Shown: positions 9,493 through 47,106 of the stretch, piece by piece
Layout of the letters: every line of letters begins with the position of its first letter
Numbering within the stretch: position 1 is the first letter of the stretch
From: Epithemia pelagica
Taxonomy: Eukaryota; Protista; Bacillariophyta
DNA length: 64,000 nucleotides
Direction: 5' to 3'
NCBI GenBank assembly: GCA_946965045.2
Contig: OX337238.1
Location: forward strand, 2,170,001 to 2,234,000
Position numbers and translations under genes: made by a program
Notes under the pieces: generated by a model
What the model was told of the DNA's origin: nothing
The model's database searches: none
What the model saw: the letters and a program-made list of their open reading frames with translations, nothing else

Positions 9493-9699
9493 AGCGAGTC
9501 AAAAGATACTTCTTTTCTCTTTTGTTCGTTTGTTCCTATTGCTACCTTGGGATTTCCATTGAGGCATTGTCATCTTCATCATCATCAGCAGCAGCAACAA
9601 CAACCGGACTCTCGCAGAATCATGGCGTTTTCTTCCACTTGTGCGATGTTCCTCCTCTCCATGGTGTCCATGGCAGCTTCTTCCCAATAGTTGTCTTGT

Positions 9700-17632: not shown

Positions 17633-18548
17633 CTATAATATAATGAACCCAACCAGCAACGAATTGTGGGCACAATACTACTTACTACTTACTTGCTACT
17701 CGTATACGTAAATGTAGAGATTATTTACATTTTAGTCTTGGTTCACGGCTAAGTACGACATTGCAATACGACTATCTAGCATTTCTAATTCTGTCCATGT
17801 TTTTTGCCGTGATTGTCGCTAAATTTTCGCTAATCATTAGCGATCATCCTAGCCGATCGCTAGCAACACAACATCTCCTTGCTTAGTTTCCATGCCTGAC
17901 ATTGTCATAATTTCCGTTTACTTGGAAAGCATGTCGAAGGTCGAAGACTATAATATTATTATTTTCTTTAACACATTCAGTTTTTAGTATCCACGCTAAT
18001 TCTGATATATCTGGTTGAAACTTGGGGCACAGTGTGGAGGAGGGATAACCGTGAGTTGGTACGGTGGTAGTGCTAAGGTCCAAGGGAGAAATCACTCCGA
18101 CTAGGTGTCCGCTTCTTAGCCACCCAGCCGCTCTCCGCGACCAACGATTTTCATTTTGTTTTTTTTGCGTTTTAGAAGAAAATTTCTGGTCAAAATGAAA
18201 ATGATCACGCCGGCCTTCTGGATCACCCTTTCGAAATTTTGTGAGCAGGCGTGCGCACTTTGACCGTTGGTCTTCCCCATTCTTGATTGTCGTCCCAAGT
18301 TTCGACCCACATTATTCGACTGAGTTCAGAATGAACGTGTCGGGTAAGCCGGCAGGCTAAGGCTAAGGGGGTCTGGGGGTGGAAAAACATTAAAGACTAG
18401 AAAAAATTTTTTTAGCTCAAGAGTCGAAATTCAGTAGTTTACACCAAAACCTTCCCACGTTAGGCAAAAAACGCCGGGCCAACCCCTATTCAAAACCATC
18501 CAGCCCCGAAGAAAAAGAATGATCGAAGAACGGTCATCCATTGTTTTA

Positions 18549-19154
18549 AGGGCTGGGTAAGCCGATCCATGTTCGGCTAAGTAGGCTCAGTACATTAAGC
18601 TACGTAGAGTACATAAAATCAGATAGTACACGTCACGCCGGAAATGGTCGGAATTTCAAAAAAATGCAAAAACGCTCGACAATGATGGCGAGATCCGGTG
18701 ACGCCGTATGCATTCACCCATGCATCGCATAAACATCCAACCACCGTAAGTCCTTTGCCTTTACCTTTGAAATTGTTGTCTGAAATTACAGAAGATTTGC
18801 CAAGTTGGCTGAAAAGGTACGCTCATTTTTCTGCAGTGATGAAATCGAACGACCGCCCTAACTCATTCATTTTTCAAGGGTGCCTGAATCAAAGTGAAAG
18901 CAAAGTTGCTCTAGTAGTAAAGATTCTTATTGTAAAAGTGATTCAGGCAGGCTCAATTATTGAGGAAGTTATGGCCATGGGGGTGACGGCTTCCACCATT
19001 GTCGAGTGATGGCTTCCAATTTGCATTGTTTCTCGTGGCAGCAAGTTTTCAATTTGAGACCATCCGCCCCACTTGTTACACTGATGAAAATAGTACTACG
19101 TAGATTAATGTACTGAGCCTACTTAGCCGAACATGGATCGGCTTACCCAGCCCT
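18549..19154. mobile_element. MITE, ~606 bp, with ~70-bp TIRs and flanking TA
   Basis: AGGGCTGGGTAAGCCGATCCATGTTCGGCTAAGTAGGCTCAGTACATTAA at 18549 is reverse-complemented at the end (19154). TA lies on both sides. No convincing coding content. Confidence 0.9.
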
Positions 19155-19324
19155 TATCATTCCATTAAATAAAAACCATTTCACCACGCTGTTCCACGTC
19201 AGAATCACGCCCAACGAACCAACCCACGAAACATCTCCCCGCGCCCTCTAGGCAGAGTAGCAACAATGTCACTAACACCTAGCCAAACATAGAAGCTGAA
19301 GACCCAGACTTGTGCTATCTCTCA

Positions 19325-21511
19325 GTAGCTAGGATTGAGTACAATAGGTCCCACGCATCTATTAGGTTCTTACTTGATTGCATCAAGTATCATCCATGTC
19401 GACTCCAGTTTGGTTGCCATCATAGCTACCCCTAGTATCTCTGGAGTCCAAGTCGACTCCATTGGAATAACGCAAAAATACAACTGCAGTAGTATTCTTC
19501 TTGACTGGGTCTCGAATCGCGTACTATTTTAGCGCATGCAGGAGTATGCATCAGTCCAGTCAGTCCCATCAGGAGTATGTCTTCGTACTTCATAGTGTGC
19601 CTCTAGCTTATAGTTGCGAGAGTATGCCATACAACTAGAAGTTGCCCTTTCAGTTGCGCAAACCATGCCAAAAATACAACTCTGCACTATGAAAGTAAGT
19701 GTACTTCATGACTGAAATACAACTTTTCTCACATTTTTCATTTCACGTACACCTTCGGCCCTTGTGGTGGCAATCCAAAATCCTACAACAGCAACAGCAA
19801 CAGCAACAACCATCCACAAGAGTCGTCGTCGTGATCGTATTCGTTGGTCTCCGACAAGGCACTGCTCCTGCATTCCCGCATCTATCAAGTCTTTATGGCG
19901 CAACAACAAGACCAACCACCAGACCAGGTGGCAGCCGAAAGAGCAACAAGGGCTCCTCCTCCTGCCCGAAAACCTGCGACAGTCGAGTGTCGGGAATACA
20001 GTTGGTCGGCGTAATGGGCCACCTTGAGCCTTGTCACAAGAAGCACCCATCGCCATGATGACGATGTCGACATCACAGCACCATCATCAACAAGACAACA
20101 ACGACAAGTCGTTGTGCGCACGCAATTGCTCGAGGCCACAAACCAAACGAGCTTCCCGTTCAACCATGTTCTCTACACGGGACGGTTGAGGTAATAACAA
20201 GCCAGGTCGCCGTACACACCACACAAAAGTGGTGGTGGTGGACTCTCCATTCAGTCATCCTTATTGGAAAGGGAGCAACAAACGAAGGAACGAGAGTATT
20301 GTTGTTGGTTGTCGTCTCAAGGTAGAATTTAATCTCACGAGCATGTCCATAAAAAAGAATCACCAAAACACTCCATGTTCGTCCTTAGGGGACACTTTGA
20401 ATCATTCTGCACTCGGACACTGCCCGTACTACCTAGGTAGGAGTAATAGGTTGGTAGAATAGACCCAAGAGATCCAAAAGAGTCATACCATCCGCCTCTT
20501 TAGTCCATAGAGAACGGTTTTTTTGTCCAATTTCACGGTCGCACTGAAACGGAGGGTATCTAGATACCTTTCTCCCGGACGATACATTCTGTGGATGGTC
20601 GAGGGGCGAGAATTGCGGTCTTCTCTTCTACTCCTATGAATGAATGATGGACGACACCCAGTGTAGTGAATTTGAGTGCGTGTATGTGCTGCTACTACAG
20701 GAGTCTCTTAGTGGACAGATATCGGGTGGAGGAAGGGCTATTTTGGCAAATGTTTGCTGCCATGTTCGGAGATTCAAACAACGGCTTCTCCTGTCCACGA
20801 CCGTGACGGCTGGATCCTGATGGTACGATAGATTGGTAGAGAGAAGGAGACTATGGCACCATGTTTGGGCACCTGGAGAGGCTCATACAGAATCGCCAAG
20901 GAGATTTTATTCCGCTCTACATACAGAGGTGTTGGAGTAAATTGGAAAAGAAGACAGATAAGGTAGCAAAGGTATCGTCTTTTGGATGCCCACCTACTAT
21001 GGCGTATAAAGTATCGTAGGAATGTACCAGAAGCTATGTAGTTGCACTCCCCGTTGTATTTTGTTCGGATACTAAGGGAGTATCCATCGCAAATTGGATC
21101 TGAGTCTTGGATTCAGTCATGAATGACATAGTCGTCTGCCCATCATCCGATTCACATCCGGGTTGTTGTATGAGTAGTGAGTAGCTATGCTATCTAGTAG
21201 ACCGCTAGCTACACTCAGAAGAGGGCGGAGTAGATCCGGACCTAGATTCTGGTGATTGTCACCGATTGGTTTTGGTAGGAAAGCAGCAATCTCTTGGTAG
21301 CTAGGATTGAGTACAATAGGTCCCACGCATCTATTAGGTTCCTACTTGATTGCATCAAGTATGATCCATGTTGACTCCAGTTTGGTTGCCATCATAGCTA
21401 CCCCTAGTATCTCTGGAGTCCAAGTCGACTCCATTGTGGAGTATCCATCGCAAATTGGATCTGAGTCTTGGATTCAGTCATGAATGACATAGTCGTCTGC
21501 CCATCATCCGA
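19325..21511 (+). repeat. Dispersed direct repeats: 19325-19464 = 21297-21436 (140 bp) and 21077-21150 = 21438-21511 (74 bp)
   Basis: Direct sequence comparison. The 140-bp pair differs at a few bases and the 74-bp pair looks identical. Confidence 0.9.
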
Positions 21512-22957
21512 AGCAAATGAATCAACTTTGGTGGCCGGCAACTTTCAATCATTACAATTTAAATTACACATAGTAACGTTCATGTTCAACATCGGGGGTG
21601 TAAAAAAGTTGGATGAACTAGAATCCAGAAAGGCTATGCTTCGAAGCGCAGCCTTAACCCTAACTACAATACCCATCATGTGGTATCTCTTGTTTCTCCT
21701 CTTTGATTCACTCCCTTCTTATGTGAGCCATTGCTATAGAAAGGCTTGAACGTGAGGAGTGAGGAATCTGGGGGTAACCCTATAGTTGGTCAAGAGCCTA
21801 CAGATAAAAATTGAGGGAGCGATGTACGCTGAAGTTAAATGGGGGGTCCAGGGCTATGGGGGGTCTGGAATTTGCAAATTACGGGTTGGCAGCCCATAAA
21901 TGAAGTCAACTCAGCTTTTAACTTTGAAGTCAGTTCTTGGTTCTGCGGTAAGCAGTAAGCAGTCACGCAACTTCAGCGCTGGAGATCCAGCGCTAGAGAA
22001 TCCCCAGCAAAGATTTTCTGTTGCGTGTATACGTTAGTCACCGTACTCTTTTCTCTGCACCGGTCACTTCTATCCTTTCTCATTTGTTTGTTTCATACTG
22101 GTCACTCTGTGTCATTCATTTGCTCCACACAGCCTTCCAAAGTGTCTGATTGCAATAACAATGATGACTCTTCAACTGTGGAAGAGTGCAATATGGATAG
22201 CAGTCTGAAGCACACCCCCAAAATGAAGGTTCTGTAAGAGGACACCTATCAGTGTATTCTTGAAAGGAGAGAATATTGACATGGCAACAAAACAAAAAGA
22301 TTCTGCTGGAGACAAGCAACTATTCCACCACTGGAAAGGAAAGCTCTCACCAAGATAAGTGCTCTAGCTACTAGGAGTACTAACCTAGCTAGGCATTTTT
22401 ATCATGGTAGCACAGGTAGTCTTATCTCCAGCGGATGCGCATACCTAGTTCCAGCAGAGACCTCTCCAGCGCACTCCAGCAGAGATGAGCTGTTGCGGGA
22501 CCGACCTCTACTAGAGATCTTGGAACACACAAACTCAACAAATTCTTGAAAAAGGAACAATTCAACTGCCACAAAAGTTCTGCAAATTGACTTTTTACTT
22601 TTTCAGAAAGAAAAGTCGACTTAAAGTCAGAAGTCAGAAACTAAGATATATTATTGACTTCCACGATTCGAGATACAAGTAATGGTAGAAGTCGCAGCAC
22701 ACGCTGACGTTGGAAGGTCATAGTTCAGAACTTGACTTCATGAAAAACGTTAAGTCAAAGTTGAAAATGTGGTGCTGTCCAACTTGATTTCACTGAGAAA
22801 AGAGAAAAGTCATGGGATCTCGGCTGGAAATGAACTTGACTTTCATGAAAAAAGTTAAAAGTTGTTAATTTAAGCTTAAAAGTGTAAAACAGTCAAGTAG
22901 AACTTCAACACTCAACTGCGTTTTGCGTGATCACTGAACTCAGCCGTTCCATCCCGA

Positions 22958-23173
22958 TGCGGTACCCCTATATGGATCCCGCCATACGTGTCGCCACGTT
23001 CCATTCCCGGTTCGCGTTCTTGACACTGCGACATGAGTCTTCCGCCACCTGGCTGTTCCTCCTTCAGTCATTTCTCGTCGCACGTGGCACTGTGGATTCC
23101 TCATTCCTCCTAATTCCTCGTAATTCCTAAAGATCACAATTTTTTTACCGTGCTAATTTACATGGGTATGGCA
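22958..23173 (+). repeat. Gypsy 5' LTR
   Basis: Matches 28452-28668 except for about one substitution and a small difference in the T run. Confidence 0.95.
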
Positions 23174-23301
23174 CTCTGATCAGAAGCTCGAAAACTTCCC
23201 CCAACACTCTTTCACCATAACCACCTGCCGTTCTTTGGCCGATCCTCGTTGATCTTATCATCCTTTGATTCCTTTCCTTTTCTTTCTTTTGCAGTCTCAT
23301 C

Positions 23302-26300
23302 ATGAGCATAGGATCTTCCCTCGTCTCCCTTGCGGATGTTCAACGCTTCCAAAAGCGCTTCGATCAAGCCTCGGCTTCAGATTCTTCCTCTGCTCTTTCC
23401 ACCCTCAAGTTGAAAGACGACGACGATGACAAGTACTACGTCCGTCTCTTGCCATTCCGAGATGGCGTGGATGAAGAGCCCTCGAATCTCTTCCTGTGGG
23501 TCCTCCATTTTGTTGACAAGGTCAAGATCTCCGGTCATCCAGAGCCCTTTGCTGCCTGCTGCACCTACTTTCCCCGTGTTACCACAAGTCTCGTAGCGGA
23601 CAAGTTCCATGATGCATTCCAGGCCTTGCCTGATGGCGCCGACCTCGATGAGGCGTGTTTCAAACGGTTGATTGCTATGATCTTCGAACCCAAGTTGACG
23701 GTTTCCGAAGTCAATGCCTTTCGGGCACACCTTCTTAGCGGTCCTCGCAAGCCACCTGATATGAACGTGGATATCCATTATCACACTCTCCAGAAGATTT
23801 CCAACGGTCTCCGTTACTTGTCTAACGACAACGCTGTCCAAGCCCTCACTGACGATGAGTTGAAGCAAGCCTTCTATCTCGGCTCTCCTGTTGCTTGGCG
23901 CAACAAGTTCAAGACGGTCAATCCCTTGGTTGCAGATTTGGTGAATCATTTCAACATCACCGACCTTCTTCATGCGATGCGTGGCTATCAAAAGGTCTCC
24001 CAAGAAAAGATGGCTGCCAATGCACAGTCCCAGGCCAAGTCCCGCAATCCTCGCGATGATTCCACTTCTCGCGGTTCCACGAAGCGTTTTTGCTCCTCTA
24101 ATGGTGGCCGTGGCGGTCTTCGCGGCGGCAATCGCCAGTCCAATGGTGGACGCCAAGCGTCCGGTGATCGTCCCGTCAATGACGGCGATTCCTGTCCGTA
24201 CAAGGACGCGATTCCTTCGCATGCCAATCATACTTGGGCCAACTGCATCTACAACCCGCAGTCATCCAATTTTAACCAAGAGCGTTTCAACGCCTTTCTT
24301 GCCCGTACCGGGTCTGGTCTTCGGACCCCTACTGGGTCTCACCCCAACAATGGTTCTCAGAACCAAGGCCGTAATGGCCAAGGCTCTCGTAGCCAGGGAA
24401 CTCCCTCGTCTGGAGGATCGCGCCCTATTGGCTCCAGTTGGGGTGCTGTTCCCCGTCGTCCTGGATCTGGCTCAGACCAGCATGCCTCTGAAGGCACCAA
24501 CACAGGCGACAATCCACCGGTTGATCCGTCGTTGGCCGAGCCGTTGCCTTCTGTGCAAGACGCGGCTTATCGTGCTCGTCAACGTCCTCTCGCTGATACG
24601 CGTGATTGGTCGAGTCTCCGTAATGCCGATCGCACGGTCCCCGGTATGTGCTCTTCTTCCTTTTTTACCTCATCCTCTCCGGATAATTCTCATCATCTTG
24701 ATGTTCTTTTTGCTCAGCAATGTCACATCCAGACTGGCCCTCCACAGGCTATGCCGGCCGAGAATGCCATCCTCAGGCCCCAATTCTCGAGGTCCGCGAA
24801 CAATTGTACAAGATCTACGGGCGTAACATGGACATCGCCCACATCTACGACTTGTCCTCCCCTGGAGGCAACGACGAATACTGTCGTTTCCCCTTATCTT
24901 AATCCTACGGATGCTGTCATCGCTGACATCGTTGATCCCAATAATGGTTTTTTATCTAACCTAGATCACTATGAAGATGTCTACTCATCTAGTTCTGTCT
25001 CTGACATTCCTAGTCTATCTAGTCCTCTTTCGGTCGCTCCCTCTGAGCCTCCGTCTGTTCCCCTCACCATTTTGATGGCTCGGTCCATTGGTGGAGTCGA
25101 GAACACCGTCCCGTTGCGTGCCCTGCTCGATTCAGGCGCCGACAAGACGATCCTGCACGCGCGCTGTCTTCAGCCCGGCATGCATCCACGTGTAACCAAT
25201 CGGTCTGTCAATACCACCATGGGTACGCGCGACCACGTCTCCGAGATTCTTCTCGAAGATTTGGTTCTCCCCGAGTTTTCTCGGACCAAACACATTTCAT
25301 ACCCCCTTTGGGCCGATATCTTTGATGCCCCCACTTGTCGTTATGACATCATTATTGGTCGCGATCTTTTGCGTCGTTTGGGCATTGTGCTCAACTTTCA
25401 CACTGGTCTCACAACTTGGGACTCCGTTGATGTCGCTATGCGCCATCGCGATTCATTCGCCACTGACCAGACATTCATGTCTCATTTCATCGACATCTTT
25501 GCCGACGATCCCATTATTGGTGATCAATTCCTCTTGGATTCGAACTACGTTCCTACGGATCTACAAGATCTGATTGACAAACAACATCATCTTACCGATG
25601 CCCAAAAGCAAGATCTTCTTGCTATTTGGCAAGACTGTGGCAAAATCTTCGATGGTGAGCTCCGTGAATATCCGGACCGAACGCTCCATCTTCATCTCAA
25701 GCCTGATGCCCAGCCTGTCCATCATCGTCACTTTTCAGTGCCCCGCAATATACATGATACTTTCACGAAGGAGCTGTGGCGCTTCGTCGACATCGGTATC
25801 CTTGAGCGCGTCGGTTCTACCGAATGGGCTGCTCCTCACTTTGCCATTCCCAAAAAGGATGGTCGTATCCGAATGATTTCGGACTTTCGTTCTTTGAACG
25901 CCCAACTCTACCGTCGGGTCTACCCCTTTCCTCGTATCGAGGACATGCTCCGTAAACGGAAAGGCTACAAGTATTTTACAAAGTTAGACATCTCCATGTG
26001 TTTTTACACATTCCGCCTCGATGAGGAATCCAGCAATCTTTGCGTCATTACTACGCCTTTTGGCAAATTCCGTTACCGTCGCTTACCGATGGGTGTTAAA
26101 CAGTCTCCTGACTTCTGTCAAGAGATTATGGAAGACGTCCTCAAGGACTTCAGCGACCATGTCGAAGTCTATATTGACGACATTGGCATCTTCTCCAATT
26201 CTTGGGAAGAACACGTGGACATCTTGTCCAAAGTTCTCCAACGTCTTCAAGACAAGAACTTCTCCATCAACCCTTCCAAATGTGAATGGGCCGTTAAAGA

Positions 26301-28371
26301 AACGGAATGGCTCGGCCATTGGCTCACGCCCACTGGGATCAAGCCCTGGAAAAAGAAGATTTCTGCCATCTTGGCATTGGCTCCGCCAAAAACCATGAAA
26401 GAACTACGTTCCTTCATTGGCATGATCAATTTCTATCGCCACATGTATCCGCAACGATCTCATATTCTTGCTCCCCTCACATCCATTACGGGTAACAAGA
26501 CCCTCGTTTGGTCCCCGCAATGTCAGCGTGCTTTCGACAAAGCCAAGTCCATGCTCGCACATGATGCCTTTCTTCGGTATCCCGACCATTACCTTCCCTT
26601 CCATGTCTATGTGGACGCCTCTGATTACCAGCTTGGTGCTGTAATCATGCAACAAGACGTTCCCGTCGCATATTACTCTCGCAAATTAAACCCTGCTCAA
26701 CGCAACTACACTACTATGGAAAAGGAGTTACTCTCCATCGTCGAAACCCTTAAGGAGTTCCGCTCCATGCTTCTCGGCTGCGCCGAACTGCACGTCCATA
26801 CGGACCATAAAAATCTTACTTACGCTACGCTCAACTCGCAACGGGTCCTCCGTTGGCGGTTGTTCCTCGAGGAGTATAACCCTATTTTTCATTACGTCCC
26901 TGGCCAGGACAATGTCATCGCCGACGCCTTGTCGCGTCTCCCTCTCTCTGAAGAGGAGGAGAAGAGTGTCTCTCCGTCGTCGACCTCCTCTACGGATGCC
27001 TCGCCGCATCCACGATCGCTCTATGATCATAGCGGACAACACTCAGTGTTGCAAGTGCCTCATGGCCCTAATGATGACCCCCGCTCTCATCACTCGCGTG
27101 ATCCTGACGCTTTCGAATCTCCCATCTTCATGGATGAGGATTTGATCGATGTCTACCTCAATCATCCTCCCATTAACGCAAATCAACCATTGCCCGTCGA
27201 TTACGCGACGATCCATCAACACCAACAAAACGATGCCGCTCTTGTGGCCAAGTTGACCGAACAACCACAGAGATTCCATCTCCAACCCTTCCCTACGGAA
27301 AACCCACAATACAACTTGATTTGTTATCGTCAGAATCCTAATGCCGCATGGCGTATTCGTATCCCAGACAGCCTCTTGGCCCATACCGTCAATTGGTATC
27401 ACCTGTCCCTCAATCACTTGGGGTCTACACGTCTTCGCGAGACGATCTCTATGCACATGAGTCATCCTAATGTGGGTTTGTATTGTGAACAAGCCGTGGC
27501 TAGTTGTGCTACATGCCAACGCTCTAAAGTCATACATCGCCATTACGGTGAACTCCCTCCTCGCGAGGTCCGAGGCAATCCATGGGCTGACATCTCTGTC
27601 GACCTCATTGGACCATGGAACGTTACCGTTCATGGGCAGAAATTAACATTTCAAGCCTTGACTATTATCGATAATGTCACTAACTTCTGCGAACTCATTC
27701 GCATCCATGACAAGACGGCACGTCATGTGGGTCTGCAATTGGAAAACGCGTGGCTCGCACGCTATCCACGTCCCGTTCGTTGCCTTTTTGATCAAGGCGG
27801 TGAATTTATTGGACATGCGTTCACGCAAGTTCTTCGAAACCATGGCATTAAGCCAGTGCCGTTGACGGCCAAGAATTCTCAATCAAATGCTCTTTGCGAG
27901 CGACTACATTTGACTGTTGGCAACACTCTTCGTGTGATCACCAACTATGAACCACCACAAGATGCGCACAATGCTGCACTTGCCGTGGATACTGCTCTGC
28001 AGACCGCTGCGTATTTCACTCGCACTGCCATTCATGGCGCCTTGAAATATTCTCCCGGCAGCCTTGCGTTCCATCGCGACATGCTGTTCGACATCCCGAT
28101 TATCGCGGACATGGAAACAGTCCGTCTGAAACGACAACAAATTGTCGATGAACGCGCTCGTCTCGCAAATCGTTCTCGTGTCTTTCATGATTACGCTGTC
28201 AACGATCGTGTGTTGCTCCGCGCCACGAATCCGGACAAGCTTGAGCTTCGCACAAGCCCCAATCCCTTTCGGATTACACAGGTCCATTCCAATGGCACTG
28301 TGACTATCCAACGTGGTCCCCACGTCACTGAACGAATCAACATTCGTCGTCTTGTTCCATTTCGTGAATAA
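23302..28371 (+). CDS. Gypsy gag-pol polyprotein (Gag-PR-RT-RNase H-IN), 1689 aa
   Basis: PR LLDSGAD. RT PKKDG...DFRSLN, LPMG, YIDD. RNase H DASDYQLG, EKELL, TDHKNL, DALSRL. Integrase H-H-C-C, DLIGP, DQGGEF, SNALCER. RT precedes IN, which is the gypsy order. Confidence 0.97.
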   Translation: MSIGSSLVSLADVQRFQKRFDQASASDSSSALSTLKLKDDDDDKYYVRLLPFRDGVDEEPSNLFLWVLHFVDKVKISGHPEPFAACCTYFPRVTTSLVADKFHDAFQALPDGADLDEACFKRLIAMIFEPKLTVSEVNAFRAHLLSGPRKPPDMNVDIHYHTLQKISNGLRYLSNDNAVQALTDDELKQAFYLGSPVAWRNKFKTVNPLVADLVNHFNITDLLHAMRGYQKVSQEKMAANAQSQAKSRNPRDDSTSRGSTKRFCSSNGGRGGLRGGNRQSNGGRQASGDRPVNDGDSCPYKDAIPSHANHTWANCIYNPQSSNFNQERFNAFLARTGSGLRTPTGSHPNNGSQNQGRNGQGSRSQGTPSSGGSRPIGSSWGAVPRRPGSGSDQHASEGTNTGDNPPVDPSLAEPLPSVQDAAYRARQRPLADTRDWSSLRNADRTVPGMCSSSFFTSSSPDNSHHLDVLFAQQCHIQTGPPQAMPAENAILRPQFSRSANNCTRSTGVTWTSPTSTTCPPLEATTNTVVSPYLNPTDAVIADIVDPNNGFLSNLDHYEDVYSSSSVSDIPSLSSPLSVAPSEPPSVPLTILMARSIGGVENTVPLRALLDSGADKTILHARCLQPGMHPRVTNRSVNTTMGTRDHVSEILLEDLVLPEFSRTKHISYPLWADIFDAPTCRYDIIIGRDLLRRLGIVLNFHTGLTTWDSVDVAMRHRDSFATDQTFMSHFIDIFADDPIIGDQFLLDSNYVPTDLQDLIDKQHHLTDAQKQDLLAIWQDCGKIFDGELREYPDRTLHLHLKPDAQPVHHRHFSVPRNIHDTFTKELWRFVDIGILERVGSTEWAAPHFAIPKKDGRIRMISDFRSLNAQLYRRVYPFPRIEDMLRKRKGYKYFTKLDISMCFYTFRLDEESSNLCVITTPFGKFRYRRLPMGVKQSPDFCQEIMEDVLKDFSDHVEVYIDDIGIFSNSWEEHVDILSKVLQRLQDKNFSINPSKCEWAVKETEWLGHWLTPTGIKPWKKKISAILALAPPKTMKELRSFIGMINFYRHMYPQRSHILAPLTSITGNKTLVWSPQCQRAFDKAKSMLAHDAFLRYPDHYLPFHVYVDASDYQLGAVIMQQDVPVAYYSRKLNPAQRNYTTMEKELLSIVETLKEFRSMLLGCAELHVHTDHKNLTYATLNSQRVLRWRLFLEEYNPIFHYVPGQDNVIADALSRLPLSEEEEKSVSPSSTSSTDASPHPRSLYDHSGQHSVLQVPHGPNDDPRSHHSRDPDAFESPIFMDEDLIDVYLNHPPINANQPLPVDYATIHQHQQNDAALVAKLTEQPQRFHLQPFPTENPQYNLICYRQNPNAAWRIRIPDSLLAHTVNWYHLSLNHLGSTRLRETISMHMSHPNVGLYCEQAVASCATCQRSKVIHRHYGELPPREVRGNPWADISVDLIGPWNVTVHGQKLTFQALTIIDNVTNFCELIRIHDKTARHVGLQLENAWLARYPRPVRCLFDQGGEFIGHAFTQVLRNHGIKPVPLTAKNSQSNALCERLHLTVGNTLRVITNYEPPQDAHNAALAVDTALQTAAYFTRTAIHGALKYSPGSLAFHRDMLFDIPIIADMETVRLKRQQIVDERARLANRSRVFHDYAVNDRVLLRATNPDKLELRTSPNPFRITQVHSNGTVTIQRGPHVTERINIRRLVPFRE

Positions 28372-28451
28372 ATGGGTTTTAATGCTGGCCTCCAAGCTTT
28401 CCCATTCTTGTCCCGCTCGAACTCCCTAGGTCCGACCAGGGAGAGGTAGAG

Positions 28452-28668
28452 TGCGGTACCCCTATATGGATCCCGCCATACGTGTCGCCACGTTCCATTC
28501 CCGGTTCGCGTTCTTGACACTGCGACATGAGTCTTCCGCCACCTGGCTGTTCCTCCTCCAGTCATTTCTCGTCGCACGTGGCACTGTGGATTCCTCATTC
28601 CTCCTAATTCCTCGTAATTCCTAAAGATCACAATTTTTTATACCGTGCTAATTTACATGGGTATGGCA
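28452..28668 (+). repeat. Gypsy 3' LTR
   Basis: Direct repeat of 22958-23173, preceded by the PPT and followed by the TSD CCCGA. Confidence 0.95.
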
Positions 28669-29870
28669 CCCGAAGGGTACTGTTTTCACCACGCACCTTT
28701 TGACAAGGACAATGGACATGCACCATGCACCATCACAATGCATTCTCCATCATCTGCACACCATGGACATTTGACATATAGACCATAGATAGTGTTTTGC
28801 TCAACCCCCATCCTTTCTTTTTTTTCTAGGATAAATGTGCTTGGTTCTAGTGTTTGTGTCCGTTTAAAAGTGAACCCTCTTCCACAACACCGTGCTGTTG
28901 CCGTAGGCTTGTCTCTTAGACCTACCACAGTCCTATTTTAGAATACGTCTCTTTCTACTTGCGTTATGGAGCATGTAGAGTGTAGAGTCCCCTGCACTGC
29001 TGGGGAAGACAAGTCATGCTCATGGCAATAAAAAAAAGAACCAAAAGGAGCAGGTCGACATCGCAATCCACTAAAGACCCAAACTGAGCGACAGAGGAAA
29101 AATGGATGGCTTCCTCCACTTATCCTATCTACTCCTAATTGAGGTCTATAGCTATATTGTGTCCTATGAATCCAACAAATGATGCCAGCAGCCCCCAATG
29201 GCATCGACCAAAATGGATGTTACATGGCACAAACAAATGACACACTTTGGCAACGTAGTGAGAGCCTAAAACTAAACATTGTCCATTCCAATGCAAGTAT
29301 TAGTCATTCCAGAACTTACCATGCTGGATGCGCAGTGACAAAGATGAGATGAGATGCCCAGGGACGAAGCATGAGGCCGTTTTTGGTGTTGGTTTGGTCA
29401 TTGCCTCGTTTTGTTGCCTGCATCGATTTTGTGGCCTCTGGCCTCTGGCTCATCGAACACAATTTTGAGTCTTGTTGAGCAGAACGCCTGCCATCTTCCA
29501 ACTGTCACAGCACGCCAGCCTTTCCAGACGGATGTACAATACCAGCTAACGGTCATAACGTTTTTCTGGGGTCACGTGTCCCAACACCAATTTTGCTCCG
29601 CAGACTCATTCCCAAACCATGCCGGCGCCCATAGATAAAAAAATCCCAGACTTTAGTTGGACATTTTTCTTTTTAAGTCTATCGTTAAATTTCTGTCGTA
29701 CCACCACTCCCGTTCACTCATGATCCATCCAACTCGGAAGTCTCCCTCCGAGGCCATCGAGACCACCAATGGTGGTATCACAATGACAAACCATTGCTAT
29801 CGAAGCATCCAGCATCCATTCAATCAAAGAGTGGATTGTCGAATAAACTCTGTGTACAACTCTTTCGACC

Positions 29871-31349
29871 ATGCCGTCCCTACCCCCGCAGATCAATGCC
29901 CCTCCGATCTACGTCAAGGCGATTGACGACCATTTACGTATCGGAAGCTTTGTCCATGTGCACCTTGCAGAACGCAACTTCACCACCATTGCCCGCATCC
30001 ACTCCAGAGTCGGAAAATCCGGCCTTAGGTTTGTTGTATACCCCCCACTGTTCCCAAAGGACGACAAACCACACCCTTCTCACGGCCCCTTACCGACACA
30101 TCACTATCCTCGTATTTTGATTTCCACTGGATGTCGAAACGTCGAGTTATACCAATCCAGGTTGATTGTTGAAAAAAAACAAGATGGTGCATCCATAATC
30201 GTTTGCCCGGCCTTTGTGTTTACGTACTACGAATTCAAGCACCCGAAGAATGCCTGGACTCATGGGCTCAAGAATGTGTTCATTGTTCGCTTTGAGGCTG
30301 TGAAAAAAGATCCGGACAACCCCTCATGCCCCATTTCACTCCGAGAGGTCGACAACCAAGATCTTTACATTTGTTTCCCGAATGAACACCAGCTTCGTCA
30401 AGTGGTTGATGATGCCATTCGGCCTCCACGTTGTTTCCACCAATCAGCCTTTGTCGGGCTGTTTATGATTCGCAAGGCACTGTTCAAACTCCTCAACAAA
30501 TGTTCAGGACAGTCAGAAGAAGAAGAGGTCGATCGCGAAACCATTGGTCTCATCCCGACAGAAACCTGGACTTATATAGTCCATCTCTGCCGCCAAGAAG
30601 GAATGAAGACTCACGAGACGAAGGGTTCGGCATCATATCTTGATGTCGAACCCAATTTTACCAGGAAGAAGGTCCGAATGGAGTATCCGACGACCATCAT
30701 TCGGTTTGAATCGCCATCTGAACTTCAATTCTTGCGCGGACTTTTGGGATTTGGTTCGACATATGGCTCGACTGAACGAAAGCCAACGCTCAAGGATGGC
30801 CCAGAAGGCGTTAGTATCAAGCCAGACCACCGCTTGACTGTTGTCAATGGCGTAGTCTCCGAAGACAGCGACAACGAATCGAACTTTAAGGTTCGATCTC
30901 GAGCACAGAGAGTTGATTTGTGCTGGTCAGACTTTCACTGCCAGGTTGTTGTGGGCTACGAGCAATACCAATACTCCGTTGGAAACGATGGTAAAATCAG
31001 GAACGCTCCACCGAATCCTGCCATGTCGAAGTTGCTACGTGGTGATTACTCCGAAGAAGACCCGACTTTGGTGTCCTCGAAAGAGAGTTCGGTCAATTCC
31101 CCTTCCCACAAGTCTCCCCGTCTCAACAAGAACGATGACCAAGTTTTGATTGGCCAGCAATTCGCCGATTGGGACGACGAGAACGTGTACGAGGTCATTT
31201 CTGTAGATGATGGTTGTTCCGGTCTGTTTGTTCTTGCCCGAGTCATTGGAGGACCGTTGTACGACCATGATTTGTCCGACGAACATCAAAAGACTGAGAA
31301 ATGGGAAGACATTGACGAAGTCAAACTACTTATTCGCCAATACAACTAA
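29871..31349 (+). CDS. 492-aa protein with a BAH-like N-terminal domain, convergent partner of the RAG1-like transposase
   Basis: The ORF is intact. 'LRIGSFVHV...IARI...VELYQS...IVCPAFV...EF...VFIVRF' follows the BAH consensus pattern (by eye). A short beta-barrel-like segment lies at the C-terminus. Its stop is 83 bp from the transposase stop. Confidence 0.55.
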   Translation: MPSLPPQINAPPIYVKAIDDHLRIGSFVHVHLAERNFTTIARIHSRVGKSGLRFVVYPPLFPKDDKPHPSHGPLPTHHYPRILISTGCRNVELYQSRLIVEKKQDGASIIVCPAFVFTYYEFKHPKNAWTHGLKNVFIVRFEAVKKDPDNPSCPISLREVDNQDLYICFPNEHQLRQVVDDAIRPPRCFHQSAFVGLFMIRKALFKLLNKCSGQSEEEEVDRETIGLIPTETWTYIVHLCRQEGMKTHETKGSASYLDVEPNFTRKKVRMEYPTTIIRFESPSELQFLRGLLGFGSTYGSTERKPTLKDGPEGVSIKPDHRLTVVNGVVSEDSDNESNFKVRSRAQRVDLCWSDFHCQVVVGYEQYQYSVGNDGKIRNAPPNPAMSKLLRGDYSEEDPTLVSSKESSVNSPSHKSPRLNKNDDQVLIGQQFADWDDENVYEVISVDDGCSGLFVLARVIGGPLYDHDLSDEHQKTEKWEDIDEVKLLIRQYN

Positions 31350-31432
31350 CTCTATACTCTATATGACGCTTGCTCTTCTTCTATGATAATCCAATTAGTA
31401 ACTCTAATGCATTCGATTACTCTATCCATTCA

Positions 31433-34400
31433 CTACATCTCCACATAGTCTTCGTCTAGCGTCACAAAGTTCATCAGCTCTGAAAACTCGTCTTCGTCCG
31501 ATTCAGAGTCCGAGTCACTGTCATCGCTGTCTTTGTTACCTTTCGGCGGACGATCGAGCCCAATTGCCCAGTCGTCCTCAACAGGACCTTCCAAGTCCTC
31601 CAATCGAATAGGCGTGTTTTCTGTGACAGCCATTCCATATTCGATTGTTCCGCCATTTCGACGAATCCATCCATCGAACTTTTCAATCTCATCCTCGCTT
31701 TTGTCCAAATACTCACTCTTGATCTGCTCCTCTGTCGTTCCGACAAGGAAAACCATTCTACGTTGTAACCACCTCGCCATTGAGAGCATTCGACTTTTGC
31801 TCCCCTTTCCACCATTTACTGCCCCGCCCCTTTGTGTGCGAGAAAAGTAATAAGTTTTAAATAGACTGTTAAAGGCTGTTGGATCATTCGGTGAGTGGAT
31901 AGTGCAGTGATACAATACACAAGGAACAAACAAACGACTTACCTTCCCACCCCTGTTGTGAATGAATCCACAGGTTCCGCCAGTGGAGTAAGTACTCCAT
32001 CACATGGGCACTACCTAACATATGGGCGTAATTCGTGATGCCCTCTTCACCGTACAGGTCACACCAATTCGCGTAGAAGGTGTCCATGTCGTTCTGGAAG
32101 GACTTGATTTCCCCGTCGGTGAGATCGTGTCGGACGTTGATCTTCTTCAGACCTTCACGGAAGTACTGCACACTGGTACTAAATTGTTGTTTCTTGACTG
32201 GGTCGCTGATGCAGCGCTCAATCAAAAGGTCAAAATTCTTCAACACCTTTCGTATGCGGACATTGTCCATAGTAATGTCCCCGATCTTCTTCTCCTTCTC
32301 ATCAAAGGGCACCTTCCACTGACTTGGTTGGGTAGGGGAACCCAGGATCTGAGTCCTCATTATGTCAGCGATGTCGTACCTGAATTTAGCTGTAGCCACA
32401 TCACTATCGTCTTCCTTCTTCGTATTGGTTAGACCGGACTTAAGGCACATGTACAAGAACTTTATGCCCATTCTGTTCTCGAGATGGAGGAGGCATGGAA
32501 TTGAATCGAGCATCATAACTAAAGCTTCAAGTTTCCGAGACGACTTCATATTCTTCAGTGTCTCATTCGCCTTATGAAACTCCCATTCGGCAGTCAGCTG
32601 TGTCTTCAGACGTTGCTGTCTCAGTTCCAGTCTCCCCGAAATGTCCAGTCGACGGATCTTCAGGTCGTTGGTGATAATATTATTGTACTGGGATCGTAGT
32701 TGGAAGGAGGCCTTGGACAGGTCGAAAGGGATGCATCGAATGTCGGTCAATTGTGATTCACTAGGATTTCCCTTTGGGTCATGATCCATGTTGAGCATGG
32801 AGTGTTTCTTCAACTTTGCCAGGTCCTTGGACATCTCGGGCATCGTTCCCTTCCGGAAATCCTTCACTTCTTTCTTTAGTTCTGCCATATGACTCTCGGT
32901 ACACATTTTTACATGTCGACAAATGAAGTGGGGGTCGGTACTCTTGCCCAACATAACGCAGAACCGACAATCCTTCTTTTCTTTGTTAGTTCGCTGGTGC
33001 AACTTCCCACTCTCCGTCGCACACTTGGAACAGGGAAACCGGCGTTGTTTCGCTGCACCTCCACGGCCCATCAATTTCCAGTCACAGCTCATGTCACAGT
33101 TTGTGACTAAGACTAATTGCTTGATATCAAACTCGCCCGGTAGAACTTTCTCCACCGCCTCCCGAATTTCTTCAAACACCCTTGCGAAAATTCCATGTAC
33201 CATTGGTGTGGATTCCGGAAGGGCGATACATCCAATAGGGAATACAGAATCCCTAGATTGCGCGTAGGGATTGGATGGGTCGTTGAACTTTACTCCAATC
33301 AAAGTGTGAGATAAATTCTTGGTGAATAAGGCACCGTCCAGACTTTGGGCCAACTTGATTGCCCGCGTCAAAGCCTCACTATCCAGAACTTTCCCGGCTT
33401 TTAGTAAACACACTATAACATCGGCCGCACGGAAAGCAAACCCCTCGGTCCCATCCTTTTGGTTGCGCTTCATTACAAAGGGACACTGAGTACGCCCAAA
33501 TGCTTCCACCATTGTAGCGTACTTCTGCAAGCAGTTGGATGATGGTAGAAGGGTGCGCTGTTCGGAACGCCGTCCGTTTCCACCATTCGGAGTAACTCGA
33601 TGCCTTCATAGTTTAAAACTCCTCCTTTCTGATCCATTAGTTTGAGAATTCTATGGGGAGTAAACACATGATCCCTGACATACTGTCGAAAGACAGAGTA
33701 TGCGCATTCCTTGAGTTGTCCACCGTGAATTTCTTCGTCAAGCATCATTTCAGTAAGCTTATTAAAGAAATATCTACCAGACCGACTCCGTTCTGTCAAA
33801 TTCTTGGTCTTGTCGATGATGAAATCCCTCACCTGTTGCACGAGGGTGTCTGCATCACTTTCGGCTAAGCAGGATTGTGGACCAACCTTCATGGTGCATT
33901 GATCGCAAACAACAGACGACGATGTGACTTGATTCTTGTTGTACCGAGCTCTTTCTTCGGCATTTCTCAGAGCTTTTTCACGTTCTTGCAGCTTCCTTTC
34001 TGTTGCTTGTAGACGGTCTTGTGCTGTTCTAAGTTGTCTTTTCAGACGATCAATCTCAGCGAGCAAATCTTCTTGGGTAGATTCTTCAGAGCCTATGGAA
34101 ACAGGTTCCATGAGAACATCAGGAGATGACGGAGCAGAGTTCATGGATGAGGGTGTGTCATCTTCCAGCACTGTTTCGACTCGGATTGCACTGGGACTTG
34201 AGGAAGAGGATGGATTGGTTTCGGAATGGGAATTTGAGCGAGATGGGCTTGGTCTGTCTTGTTGGCCTGTGGTGGTTACTTCTTCGGGTACTACGGTTGA
34301 AGAAGTCGAAGGTGCTTGCGGTTGGCCAATAGGAGCCTGTGAAAGTGGGTCAGATGGTGAGTTTGGAAGGTCTGGGTTTGTGTCCTGGTCGTCCTCGTCT

Positions 34401-35251
34401 CCTTCTTCAACATCCGACAAATACTGATGATCTGATAAAATTATTGGAACAAATCTACATGAGGGTGTGTCTTCAGCATCAGTTGGAGTGGCTACCTTCT
34501 TCTTGCGTCTTCGAGTACTTTTCTTTCGGCGACTACTGCGTTCTGGCTCAGGATATCGTCGATCAGTGGGCCTGACGATGTTCCTGTGTGAGGCGACACA
34601 CTTATAGGGACCTTTTTCTCGTTTGCGGTTGATCTTCAGCTTGGGTGACGATCTTTCGTCATCATCGGCGCTTTTGCATTGACCGCAAAAGAAGTAATCG
34701 GAGAATTCTCCTATGTATCGGTCGAGGCCGAAGACAGAACACGGTTGTGTGTCTTCACCCTCGAAGTCATCAATGATCTTTTGGATCCTCTCTTTCTCTG
34801 AAGCCGTGTTGGCTATGGGGGCATTCTCTTGTAATCTTCTGGATCTGGTCCGTAAGTTGGGAGACGGAGGTCTTGGGGGGGATGATGGTGCCGCACGACG
34901 CTTTGGGTTGCGACGTGATCCTGCTGGTCGGGGGTTGGGGGTGGCTTTCTTTCTCTTCTTTTGGTTCTTTTTTGGGGGTGCTTTCTTTTTTCTCTTCTTT
35001 GAGTCGTCCTCTTCGACACTGGGTTCTTGGGTCGCGTCCTCTTCGACATTGGGTTCTTGGGTTTCGACAGGTGGGTCGTCATTTTCCACTGGTGGATCCG
35101 TTGAGTTGTCCTGGGAAATCTCTTTCAGGATGGTGTCCTGGAGAATGGACAAAGGGACGAAGGATATGGGAACACAGCATGAATCTGTGCATGGATTAGA
35201 CTCGGATTCCACCAAGGGGTCGTTAAGAGGCTTCGAGAGAGACATCGTCAA
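31433..35251 (-). pseudogene. RAG1/Transib/Chapaev-like DDE transposase (one frameshift ~33555-33570; intron 31876-31942)
   Basis: SLDGA (first D), NCDMS (second D), FPCSKC, LLHLE and ITNYAHMLGSAHVMEY. After removing a 67-nt GTAAGT...CAG intron it reads SQQGWEAFNSLF (catalytic E). The N-terminal part has a CxxC, a basic/acidic low-complexity region and a coiled coil. Confidence 0.8.
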
Positions 35252-36085
35252 AGAAAGGCTTCGTCAAATGGTGATCTAAAGCAAAACAGAGCGACGTGAT
35301 ACGTTTTGTTTTGTTGGGTTGTTGTTTTGATAAATTGGGTGAGACTGAGGTGCGATTGGTCATCTTATTGTAGAAAAATTGATTCTAGTGTAAGGACGCG
35401 AGTCGATATTTTTTCATCACCTCACATTTAAAAGCAATGATTCGTTTGGGAATTACTGCTCGTGTAGTTGTGTGCAGATTGTGAGCCAACTTGGATTAGT
35501 GAGAGCGTGACCAAGAGCGGGGATTCGTTCTTGACTATGTAATGGATGATTGCCCGCCGTTAGTCTCGCTCTCACTATCCTATATCGTCCGTTGGAACGG
35601 TCCAAAGTTGGAGGTTGGCCTAAATTTGGAATTTTGTCGGAATGAAGTTTTGTATTTAACAAAAGGGCTTCTCACTGATTAGGGGATACTAAAAATGTCA
35701 CTTTCTGATGGCGGCTCGCAGGCTCCTGCGTGAGTTGGCGATGACGGTTAACACCGTTAGCTGGTATTGAATATTATTTTTCCAAGTCTTTTTGCGGAAT
35801 ATTCAAACCCGAAGCGACAGCAATCGAACCCTCTATGTCTGTCATGCCAGTCGACACGAAATTTTGTTGGGATTCCTCATGGAATCGCAACGCTTTCTGC
35901 AGCAACAACAACAATTAAGTACGAATACGTCTCCTCCATGGGAAGCCGTCTTGATTGTGACGGGGTGTGACGACCATCCACCCTGTCCCCAAGTGTTGGA
36001 AATGGTGGTGGATCATCCGCAAGCACCACCCGTCTTGTTGGCCCCGCAATCCACGGCTCAAGTCTTGCAAGAATTGCATGCCTAT

Positions 36086-37590
36086 TGCCGCGCCGGGTGA
36101 GGCGGCCAAAACCTCGAAAATAGCGGCCAAATGACCATGATGGACATCTAGCGTAACTCACTCAATATAGGACGCCCATGCCCCAATATCGAGCGACGTT
36201 TTCTTCAAACAATGCTCTCGGCCCCTGCGGGCCACTTTTGCTATAGCGGCCATGGTTATCGAGTTCTAACTCACCATTGTAGGGTCATTTTTTTTCGTCC
36301 ACGTAATGGCCGCTAGATTGCCCTTTGGCCGCTACATTGATGGTACTATAAGTCAACCACTACGTGCCCTACCATCAAATGGTGCCTACGATGTGTCTAT
36401 CGTAGTGTAAGGAAGAGCACTTTCAGGTCATATGGGCTATCGGTGGGCGTGATAGCGCAAACAAACCCCTGCTCGATTTGGCTCATTTTTGTTGGAACGA
36501 GATTTTCATCCGTAACTCGATGTACTGCCGAAGCTCCAATATGGTAGTTCTACAGTTCATACTTGAAGGGCTTTTACTTTAGGGTCTACCTTCGTGAAAC
36601 CAACTACCATAACTATCGTAGGTGCCATGGTTATCGCAAAATAGTCTTCCATCGATGAGGATTTTCATCTCTCGCGACACGAACCACAATAGATCCTCAT
36701 CGTCCGTTTCCGCTACTCGCCTCGTTCAATCTTGATTCTCTGCCCCTCCTACTTTGTAGCATTTTAGTTTAGGACCTACTTGAGCGTGACGAGGTATCAG
36801 ATTGACCGTAGGCGCCATGGTCATTGAGAAGGTGCCATCCATTGATGGAGGCATTTTTCCCGATGTAGCACGTAGCACACAACATTTCGAGACCGAAGGA
36901 CGTTGCTACTCGTCTCGTTCAATATTGTTTTGCTTGCCTTCCTACTTTGTAGCATTTTAGTTTAGAACCTACTTGATCGTAACGAGGTCTCAGATTGATC
37001 GTAGGCGCCATGGTCATTGAGAAGGTGCCATCCATTGATGGAGGCATTTTCCCCGATGTAGCACGTAGCACACAACATTTCGAGACCGAAGGACGTTGCA
37101 ATTTGCTCCATCAATTTGGACTCGCTTGCCTTCCTACTTTGTAGCATTTTAGTTTAAAACCTACTTGATCGTAACGAGGTCTCAGATTGATCGTAGGTGC
37201 CATGGTCATTGAGAAGGTGCCATCCATTGATGGAGGCATTTTTTCTCGATGTAGCACGTAGCACACAACATTGCGAGAACGAAGGACGTTGCTACTCGTC
37301 TCGTTCAATATTGTTTCGCTTGCCTTCCTACATTGTAGCATTTTAGTTTAGAACCTACTTGATCGTAACGAGGTCTCAGATTGATCGTAGGCGCCATGGT
37401 CATTGAGAAGGTGCCATCCATTGATGGAGGCATTTTCCCCGATGTAGCACGTAGCACACAACATTTCGAGACCGAAGGACGTTGCTAATCGTCTCGTTCA
37501 ATATTGATTCGCTTGCCTTCCTACTTTGTAGCATTTTAGTTTAGGACCCACTTGATCGTAACGAGGTCTCAGATTGACCGTAGGTGCCAT
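36086..37590 (+). repeat. Left TIR with ~4.5 tandem copies of a ~193-bp unit (~36720-37590)
   Basis: CTACTTTGTAGC-type anchor at 36749, 36942, 37134, 37328 and 37521. The outer part is the near-perfect reverse complement of the right end. Confidence 0.93.
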
Positions 37591-45925: not shown

Positions 45926-47106
45926 CGTGTGCTTTGTGCTACATTGGGAAAATGCCTCCATCAATGGATGGCCCAATTTCAATGACCATGGCGCCTACGG
46001 TCAATCTGAGACCTGGGTACGCTCAGGTAGGTCCTAAACTAAAATGCTACAAAGTAGGAAGGCAAGCGAATCAATATTGAACGAGACGATTAGCAACGTC
46101 CTTCGGTCTCGAAATGTTGTGTGCTACGTGCTACATCGGGAAAAATGCCTCCATCAATGGATGGCACCTTCTCAATGACCATGGCGCCTACGGTCAATCT
46201 GAGACCTGGGTACGCTCAAGTAGGTTCTAAACTAAAATGCTACAAAGTAGGAAGGCAAGCAAAACAATATTGAACGAGACGAGTAGCAACGTCCTTCGGT
46301 CTCGAAATGTTGTGTGCTACGTGCTACATCGGGAAAAATGCCTCCATCAATGGATGGCACCTTCTCAATGACCATGGCGCCTACGGTCAATCTGATACCT
46401 CGTTACGCTCAAGTAGGTCCTAAACTAAAATGCTACAAAGTAGGAGGGGCAGAGAATCAAGATTGAACGAGACGAGTAGCGGAAACTGACGATGAGGATC
46501 TATTGTGGTTCGTGTCGCGAGAGATGAAAATCCTCATCGATGGAAGACTATTTTGCGATAACCATGGCACCTACGATAGTTATGGTAGTTGGTTTCACGA
46601 AGGTAGACCCTAAAGTAAAAGCCCTTCAAGTATGAACTGTAGAACTACCATATTGGAGCTTCGGCAGTACATCGAGTTACGGATGAAAATCTCGTTCCAA
46701 CAAAAACAAGCCAAATCGAGCAGGGGTTTGTTTGCGTTATCACGCCCACCGATAGCCCATATGACCTGAAAGTGCTCTTCCTTACACTACGATAGACACA
46801 TCGTAGGCACCATTTGATGGTAGGGCACGTAGTGGTCGACTTATAGTACCATCAATGTAGCGGCCAAAGGGCAATCTAGCGGCCATTACGTGGACGAAAA
46901 AAAATGACCCTACAATGGTGAGTTAGAACTCGATAACCATGGCCGCTATAGCAAAAGTGGCCCGCAGGGGCCGAGAGCATTGTTTGAAGAAAACGTCGCT
47001 CGATATTGGGGCATGGGCGTCCTATATTGAGTGAGTTACGCTAGATGTCCATCATGGTCATTTGGCCGCTATTTTCGAGGTTTTGGCCGCCTCACCCGGC
47101 GCGGCA
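45926..47106 (-). repeat. Right TIR with ~3 copies of the ~193-bp unit
   Basis: GCTACAAAGTAG at 46046, 46239 and 46432. Reverse complement of 36086 to ~37270. Confidence 0.93.

Follow-up and report, generated by a model that had tools for sequence, protein, structure and literature searches.

A two-gene DNA transposon of the diatom Epithemia pelagica that pairs a transposase of predicted RAG1-like fold with a convergent partner gene

RAG1-RAG2 is the textbook example of a domesticated two-subunit transposase, and the need of RAG1 for a partner has usually been studied in animals only. A stretch of 64,000 nucleotides from the diatom Epithemia pelagica (GenBank assembly GCA_946965045.2, contig OX337238.1, positions 2,170,001 to 2,234,000 of the forward strand; hereafter the window, whose own numbering is used throughout) raises the question whether an enzyme of this kind is accompanied by a different second gene in a microalga. 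Here, a transposase gene on the reverse strand and an intact gene on the forward strand, termed the partner, converge between positions 29871 and 35251. A preliminary description based on the sequence alone had proposed this pair as a candidate ProtoRAG-like system in which a BAH-like chromatin reader stands in place of RAG2, and had found neither terminal inverted repeats (TIRs) nor a target site duplication (TSD). Both are present, and the two genes form one mobile unit. We consider it likely that positions 29537–35769 are one copy of a cut-and-paste DNA transposon family recently active in E. pelagica, an estimate that applies to the whole explanation developed below, comprising the mobile family, its two genes, its group placement and the accessory role of the partner.

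A mobile unit and its target site

The transposon measures 6,233 bp (29537–35769, no strand assigned) and its ends read 5'-CAATACC...GGTATTG-3', limits that were drawn from the copy at locus L003 and from an empty-site allele in run X2. A perfect 17-bp TIR, CAATACCAGCTAACGGT, lies on the forward strand at 29537–29553 and its perfect complement on the reverse strand at 35753–35769; the pattern matched exactly twice in the window, namely at both ends of the element, with 0.06 matches expected by chance. Positions 29536–35771 align with positions 9666–15914 of L003 at 98.0% identity over 6,249 bp, and outside these limits the two loci share no similarity, their flanks being unrelated. In run X2, one contig joins the left flank of the window (...CCAGACGGATGT, 29/29 nt) straight to position 35770 onward, so that the site is filled in one sample and empty in another. 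It follows that the insertion is recent and that the samples are polymorphic for it. Together, the L003 copy with its unrelated flanks, the perfect TIRs and the empty site settle the co-mobility of both genes, which the preliminary description had left unproven. TIRs were not definable in the old copy L001, and the contig carrying L010 stops before the right end of the element.

Comparison of the filled site (GGATGT-A-element-A-ATATT) with the empty site of run X2 (GGATGT-A-ATATT) leaves the element plus one A as the only difference, and the two copies of this base are found at positions 29536 and 35770. Among the eight copies with located TIRs (window, L003, L009, L002, L004, L005, L008 and L006), the base preceding the left end is identical to the one following the right end in seven (A/A, A/A, G/G, T/T, C/C, T/T, C/C), the exception being L006 with C/G. 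All four bases are represented among the matching copies, and at least seven matches in eight would arise with a chance of about 4e-4 at one in four per copy. Perfect duplications of 2 bp were seen in two copies, of 3 bp in one and of 5 bp in none, and TSDs of 2, 3, 4, 5 and 8 bp with boundary offsets from -2 to +2 all stayed at chance level in these eight copies. A 5-bp TSD of the Transib type is excluded by its absence from all eight copies at any offset and by the empty-site comparison. The element thus appears to duplicate one target base. It may alternatively carry one extra terminal base and make no TSD, which, however, would not predict matching flanking bases across subfamilies. We found no description of 1-bp TSDs in the literature searched.

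All eight copies begin with CA and end with TG, and their common end motif is roughly CA-H-T-W-S-S-AGC. The termini of individual copies (CAATACCAGC, CACTTCCAGC, CAATACGAGC, CACTACGAGC, CATTAGGAGC) agree with the heptamer of recombination signal sequences (RSS; CACAGTG or CACTATG type) only in the first two to three bases. In the subterminal regions of the window copy no k-mer of at least 8 bases recurs at least three times, hence there are no repeat arrays.

The preliminary description had proposed to look for conserved convergent linkage, and this was found. Transposase and convergent partner occur together in all nine loci of the assembly that were reached through either protein (window, L001, L002, L003, L004, L005, L008, L009 and L010), and in each of these both genes were confirmed by hidden Markov model (HMM) scans of six-frame open reading frames (ORFs). 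The same layout is present on two contigs from other samples, in which transposase identity is 28–35% and partner identity about 26%. One of them, the 6.4-kb metagenome contig L006, encodes a transposase 35% and a partner 26% identical (E 4e-21) and has its own 17-bp TIRs, the first 10 nt of which are identical to the TIR of the window; on the other, the Logan assembly contig L012, the partner homologue was detected with E 2.5e-20. Judged from these sequences, the partner has travelled with the transposase over a divergence that has left the transposases only about 28% identical. Between window and L003, the ratio of non-synonymous to synonymous substitution rates (dN/dS) amounts to 0.17 in the partner and 0.20 in the core of the transposase, and these values of about 0.2 place both genes under purifying selection; the low-complexity N-terminus of the transposase reaches 0.49.

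The transposase and its place among DNA transposons

The transposase of the window is not a single ORF but is spread over three successive reading frames of the reverse strand (35251–33473, 33530–31884 and 31933–31433), and an intron and a frameshift are found there. Exon 1 (31943–35245, with the ATG at 35245) encodes a low-complexity N-terminus, a conserved CxxC...CxxxH region and the catalytic core, and its frame is broken in this copy. It is followed, directly after the catalytic Glu codon, by a GT-AG intron of 67 nt in phase 1 (31876–31942; borders GAAG/GTAAGT...CAACAG/CC) and by the last exon (31433–31875), which contributes 146 aa and a split Ala codon and ends with the stop at 31433–31435. 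In run X4, an RNA contig passes straight from 31875 to 31943 and omits the 67 nt, and the intron-less paralogue P0010 reads ...QQGWEAFNS... through the intron site, giving a spliced transposase of about 1,248 aa. Pairwise alignment placed a 1-bp deletion near position 33559, where the window lacks a G that is present in L003, an intact sister with a single 1,120-aa ORF across the frameshift region. The window transposase is therefore frameshifted. The extra G is also found in contigs of runs X2 and X3, and those of run X1 agree with the window.

The window copy is transcribed, as two X4 RNA contigs (31428–32442) match its allele at 21 of the 21 positions that distinguish it from L003; the X4 contigs over 34485–35245 are of the L003 type. 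Since its own frame is broken, this copy probably depends on intact copies for movement; it would be non-autonomous for the transposase and be served in trans by copies such as L003. A conserved block in the N-terminal part (34550–35000, residues ~126–229) with the pattern C-x17-CxxC...C-x3-H is kept in L002, L006, L007 and L008 and is probably the DNA-binding zinc finger of the transposase; it gave no Pfam match.

In an alignment of 53 transposases (A3), the residues of a DDE active site are invariant or nearly so, and L003 has them intact. In core numbering, the first Asp, D170 (codon 33336–33338, in SLDGA), is near-invariant and falls within a modelled beta strand; the second, D251 (33093–33095, in TNCDMS), is followed by C272-x2-C275; and the invariant Glu, E634 (31944–31946, in SQQGWE), is preceded by H608-x5-H614, all three codons being on the reverse strand. 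Equally conserved are these cysteines, the motifs PCxLHxExR and NYxH608-x5-H614, and an extra zinc cluster (CxxC...CxH: C293, C296, C309, H311) besides the zinc site formed by C-x2-C and H-x5-H. With a profile of ten relatives, a search of 1.84 billion representatives returned 2,331 proteins at E ≤ 0.001. The named relatives come from Seminavis robusta, a metagenome-assembled genome of Bacillariaceae, and Epithemia, all of them diatoms, and the family is therefore regarded as a diatom family. A sister subfamily has its 1,208-aa transposase on three different assembly contigs (P0024, P0166 and P0167), all of them in one 90%-identity protein cluster, which suggests another young, multi-copy subfamily.

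Known sequence models do not reach this enzyme. Pfam returned nothing relevant for the four window ORFs, nine distant transposases or the 53 members of A3 (for the RAG1 family none at E ≤ 10), no profile of Transposase_21, Transposase_24 or Plavaka matched any member examined, and searches of PDB sequences with phmmer and with the 53-sequence profile were empty, the profile reaching neither a RAG1 nor a Transib chain at E ≤ 10. The AlphaFold model of the core of the intact copy, built with A3, reached a predicted local distance difference test (pLDDT) of 92.2 and a predicted template modelling score (pTM) of 0.85. The top 49 Foldseek matches in the PDB were only RAG1, amphioxus BbRAGL and HzTransib (E 1e-9 to 6e-3; best 6cg0_A, E 1.3e-9), followed by the P element at E 8e-3. 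VIA scored mouse RAG1 at Z 20.9, HzTransib at 20.6 (377 residues) and BbRAGL at 19.0, with the P element at 12 and Hermes at 7; on RAG1, model residues 56–634 were placed on residues 460–965, and in several alignments (6cim, 6cik, 6oeo) the last model residue, 634, is paired with RAG1 residue 962. On the evidence of this model, the transposase is predicted to be RAG1-like in fold and active-site layout, with the pre-RNase H, RNase H and ZnC2/ZnH2 modules of the catalytic core arranged as in RAG1/Transib, and this part of the preliminary description stood.

Kinship with Transib or ProtoRAG did not follow from it. In a shape search of the ESM-Atlas, models of Transposase_21 (CACTA/EnSpm) were matched with TM scores of 0.54–0.55 and those of RAG1 with 0.51–0.58. 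To our knowledge no CACTA-type structure has been solved, and the PDB ranking could therefore not show a likeness to CACTA. Given a fold equally near to CACTA/EnSpm models and the lack of any Pfam family, we regard the transposase as a diatom lineage of its own within the CACTA-Mirage-Chapaev-Transib (CMCT) group, and not as a member of Transib or ProtoRAG, a placement based solely on fold and motifs. The 1-bp TSD, the termini unlike an RSS and a partner unrelated to RAG2 also speak against kinship with ProtoRAG. The proteins closest in structure to the transposase included some from Rhizophagus.

The partner gene and rival explanations of its role

The partner gene (29871–31349, forward strand) encodes 492 aa in an intact frame with no introns, and its stop is separated from that of the transposase by 83 bp (31350–31432), as had been described. 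Word-seeded searches covering 5.8 billion clustered proteins, first with the sequence alone and afterwards with a profile built from 8 sequences, retrieved only nine relatives, all of them ENA records. Seven were traced, in each case to transposase-linked loci of this assembly, and two (P0015, P0017) are untraced; no free-standing host paralogue of the partner was found among these proteins.

Alignments of 8 (A2) and 13 (A4) members were built. A4 has an N-terminal region (~1–190), a strongly conserved centre (~190–390) with invariant residues including K206, Y235, L288, R289, P305, L307 and G327, a low-complexity linker and a C-terminal block, which A4 and the model present as a small beta-barrel (~425–492). 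The 492-aa protein, 12 relatives and three window partner fragments gave no Pfam match at E ≤ 10 to BAH, Tudor, chromo, PHD, kelch or any other domain. The absence of kelch repeats and of a PHD finger agrees with the earlier account. The BAH-like N-terminus it had proposed was not recovered: the isolated 190 residues gave no BAH match at the same threshold, a search of PDB sequences with the 13-sequence profile was empty, and residues 1–190 were modelled with a pLDDT of 25–40, too low for this region to be read or for fold searches to bear on it. A language-model search of the ESM-Atlas with the whole partner and two parts of it yielded scores of at most 0.71 and at best a weak PH-like resemblance, and Foldseek (PDB, AFDB) and Atlas shape searches on the poor partner model returned nothing usable. 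For residues 194–418 (30450–31124), Foldseek against AFDB clusters listed Rhizophagus U9UFA6 (219 aa) with a probability of 1.00 but a TM score of 0.39.

Residues 421–492 (pLDDT ~80) were modelled as a small barrel with a helix, on which Tudor, MRG15 chromo, KOW, PWWP and SH3-like domains superpose with Z 5.0–5.8 and a root mean square deviation of 2–3.5 Å. For a barrel of 55 residues, a Z below 8 is in the range of common arrangements and below the level of kinship. The aromatic positions considered for a methyl-lysine or methyl-arginine cage (F of QF, Y of VYEV, Y of YDH and W of KWED) recur in A4 but are not invariant, W481 being lost in four members. The model is thus compatible with a weakly SH3/Tudor-like barrel in the sense of a common arrangement only, and a role of the partner as chromatin reader, which the preliminary description had put forward, is a possibility for which neither sequence nor fold gave evidence beyond this barrel. 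At six of the eight sites where substitutions separate the partner genes of window and L003, the window has G and L003 has A, and the partner coding sequence diverges from that of L003 by 0.54%, compared with 1.4–3.6% in the rest of the element.

In the explanation that we prefer, the enzyme would bind the CA-ended TIRs as a dimer and would cut and rejoin DNA like its structural relatives, with an unusually short target stagger. The partner would most likely be a dedicated accessory subunit needed by the transposase, one that recognises the ends or acts in synapsis, or that uses its SH3/Tudor-like C-terminal barrel as a tether to DNA or chromatin, in a role analogous to that of RAG2, CACTA TnpA or the Harbinger Myb-like protein and kin to none of them. 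In our estimate there is about an even chance that its accessory role is obligate. The original idea of a histone reader, of BAH or another type, which steers or licenses a RAG1-like enzyme as an independent analogue of RAG1-RAG2 and ProtoRAG, draws on a convergent layout with a RAG1-fold enzyme that is real and conserved, and on the superposition of the last 70 residues on Tudor, chromo-barrel, PWWP and KOW folds. We nevertheless hold it to be quite improbable in view of the missing BAH, Tudor, chromo or PHD match in all 13 family members, the empty profile search, the low model confidence over the supposed BAH region, and a barrel whose Z scores and variable aromatics do not exceed a common arrangement.

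A partner resembling TnpA, i.e. a DNA-binding and synapsis protein in an element that is essentially of CACTA/Mirage type (CMC) and owes its RAG1 likeness to that whole group, seems to us unlikely, if still deserving attention. The Transposase_21 models match as well as the RAG1 models, the termini are CA..TG, the TSD, being very short, comes closer to Mirage or ESTA with 2 bp than to Transib with 5 bp, and CACTA elements likewise have a second gene. However, none of the Transposase_21, Transposase_24 or Plavaka profiles matched, subterminal repeat arrays, the usual TnpA binding sites, are missing, the TSD is 1 bp and not 2–3 bp, and the partner has no recognisable DNA-binding domain. The partner might also be cargo, such as a captured host gene or a gene for anti-silencing or host benefit, and be dispensable for the chemistry of transposition. 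Many transposons of the wider group carry cargo genes, for instance TET/JBP in fungal elements (PMC12730594), and transposase RNA was seen without partner RNA. Such a role is nevertheless quite improbable, as all traced relatives of the partner are linked to the transposase, the search of 5.8 billion proteins gave no free-standing host paralogue, and position and orientation are kept down to 26% identity, which would not be expected of sporadic cargo.

Several points weigh against the accessory-subunit explanation and the placement given here. The AlphaFold model of the partner is poor (mean pLDDT 45.7, built from 8 sequences), so that the function proposed for the partner is deduced solely from its linkage and conservation. 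In the single RNA run (X4), where contigs show presence and not absence, the partner is covered by no contig. By HMM scan, no partner was detected beside the transposase of the decayed Epithemia clementina copy L007, and neither HMM nor hhalign detected one among the convergent ORFs of L011 (24% transposase identity). The evidence for a 1-bp TSD comes from eight copies and a single short loose end of 29 nt, and the placement inside the group from fold and motifs only.

As a tentative extension, which we regard as possible and short of probable, this may be a superfamily-level lineage of RAG1-fold transposons currently active in diatoms, with a 1-bp stagger not known from this group and dependent on its own three-domain partner, i.e. 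an independent origin of a two-subunit system. If true, a two-subunit transposase of RAG1 type would have arisen a second time, outside the animals, and its partner would have no relation to RAG2. An expressed transposon of RAG1 fold that is naturally active, measures a compact 6.2 kb and keeps a different partner gene in a microalga makes it testable whether RAG1-fold enzymes recurrently recruit a second subunit, and what that subunit does. The 1-bp target duplication, if confirmed, would widen the known target-joining geometry of this enzyme class. Because neither the transposase, with its 2,331 relatives and no Pfam model, nor the partner family is modelled, both are missed by standard annotation of diatom genomes, and an active element with known ends is a potential tool for insertional mutagenesis in diatoms. 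The element itself is of a kind already known, the cut-and-paste transposons of the CMCT group, and stands out by its new partner family and its unusual TSD.

Further features were noted within and around the element. An imperfect palindrome with two 39-nt arms (35497–35577, no strand assigned) is situated upstream of the transposase gene and may be a promoter or binding element; it also occurs in the divergent copy L001, where its core GAGAGCG.GAC...GTC.CGCTCTC is retained at 7932–8004 in a copy that shares only about 66% of its nucleotides with that of the window. A retroelement some 11.4 kb long (18089–29535; gag-pol ORF of 1,689 aa at 23302–28371) ends 1 bp before the transposon, and an internally deleted derivative of it, with the first 228 bp joined to the last 858 bp, is found at 1637–2720 of L001. 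A disturbance of the left flank by this retroelement was rejected, as the empty-site contig shows that the transposon landed 1 bp beyond its end. Inverted repeats of 318 bp with 99.4% identity (36083–36400 and 46792–47109), the first of which begins some 310 bp right of the transposon, form the long TIRs of a neighbouring element. Most copies among L001–L005, L008 and L009 adjoin copia-type (RVT_2) or other retroelement genes, and the family is therefore found mainly in repeat-rich DNA.

Comparison with known systems

Two separately encoded proteins, a transposase and a Myb-like protein, are conserved together in PIF/Harbinger elements, which offer an analogy for an obligate accessory protein, but differ from the diatom element in an unrelated transposase fold, a 3-bp TWA TSD and a recognisable Myb/SANT partner. 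CACTA elements encode TnpA beside TnpD, i.e. a second protein, and a second gene is therefore not unusual in the wider transposon group. The diatom transposase resembles EnSpm/CACTA in the fold comparison given above, yet has no Transposase_21 match, and its termini and TSD are other than those of CACTA (3 bp). In the literature searched, Repbase not being covered, we found no description of diatom elements of RAG1 fold or of the CMCT group that carry this partner, in line with the earlier statement that no description of such an arrangement was known.

ProtoRAG and TransibSU of amphioxus and echinoderms share with the diatom element the TIR-bounded cut-and-paste organization, two convergent genes, the RAG1 fold, the DDE triad and a Cys2/His2 zinc site. 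In contrast to them, the diatom partner has neither kelch propeller nor PHD finger and is unrelated to RAG2, the TSD is 1 bp and not 5 bp, the termini read CAATACC or CACTTCC and not an RSS-like heptamer, and the transposase, from a diatom and not an animal host, is not recognised by RAG1 sequence models. Canonical Transib is a single-gene element with typically 5-bp TSDs and CAC-heptamer termini (PMC4411706), none of which holds for the diatom element. Its enzyme (HzTransib, PDB 6pqx) and the diatom transposase superpose as reported above and are both single-dimer DDE enzymes with a zinc module.

The CMCT clade was defined by Kojima 2025 (PMC12730594) and comprises EnSpm/CACTA, Mirage, Chapaev and Transib, and also ESTA, Plavaka and Lanisha; its features are C(2)C and H(3-4)H motifs that lie after the second Asp and before the Glu, 5'-CA..TG-3' termini and TSDs of 2–5 bp (PMC12730594). 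The diatom family shares C272-x2-C275 and a His pair at this place, as well as the CA..TG termini in all eight copies. It differs in that H608 and H614 are five residues apart and not three to four, in the extra CxxC...CxH cluster of its transposase, in a 1-bp TSD below the range of the clade, in the lack of subterminal repeat arrays and in its new partner family. The diatom family fits the CMCT clade and is beyond the reach of sequence models of the known members.

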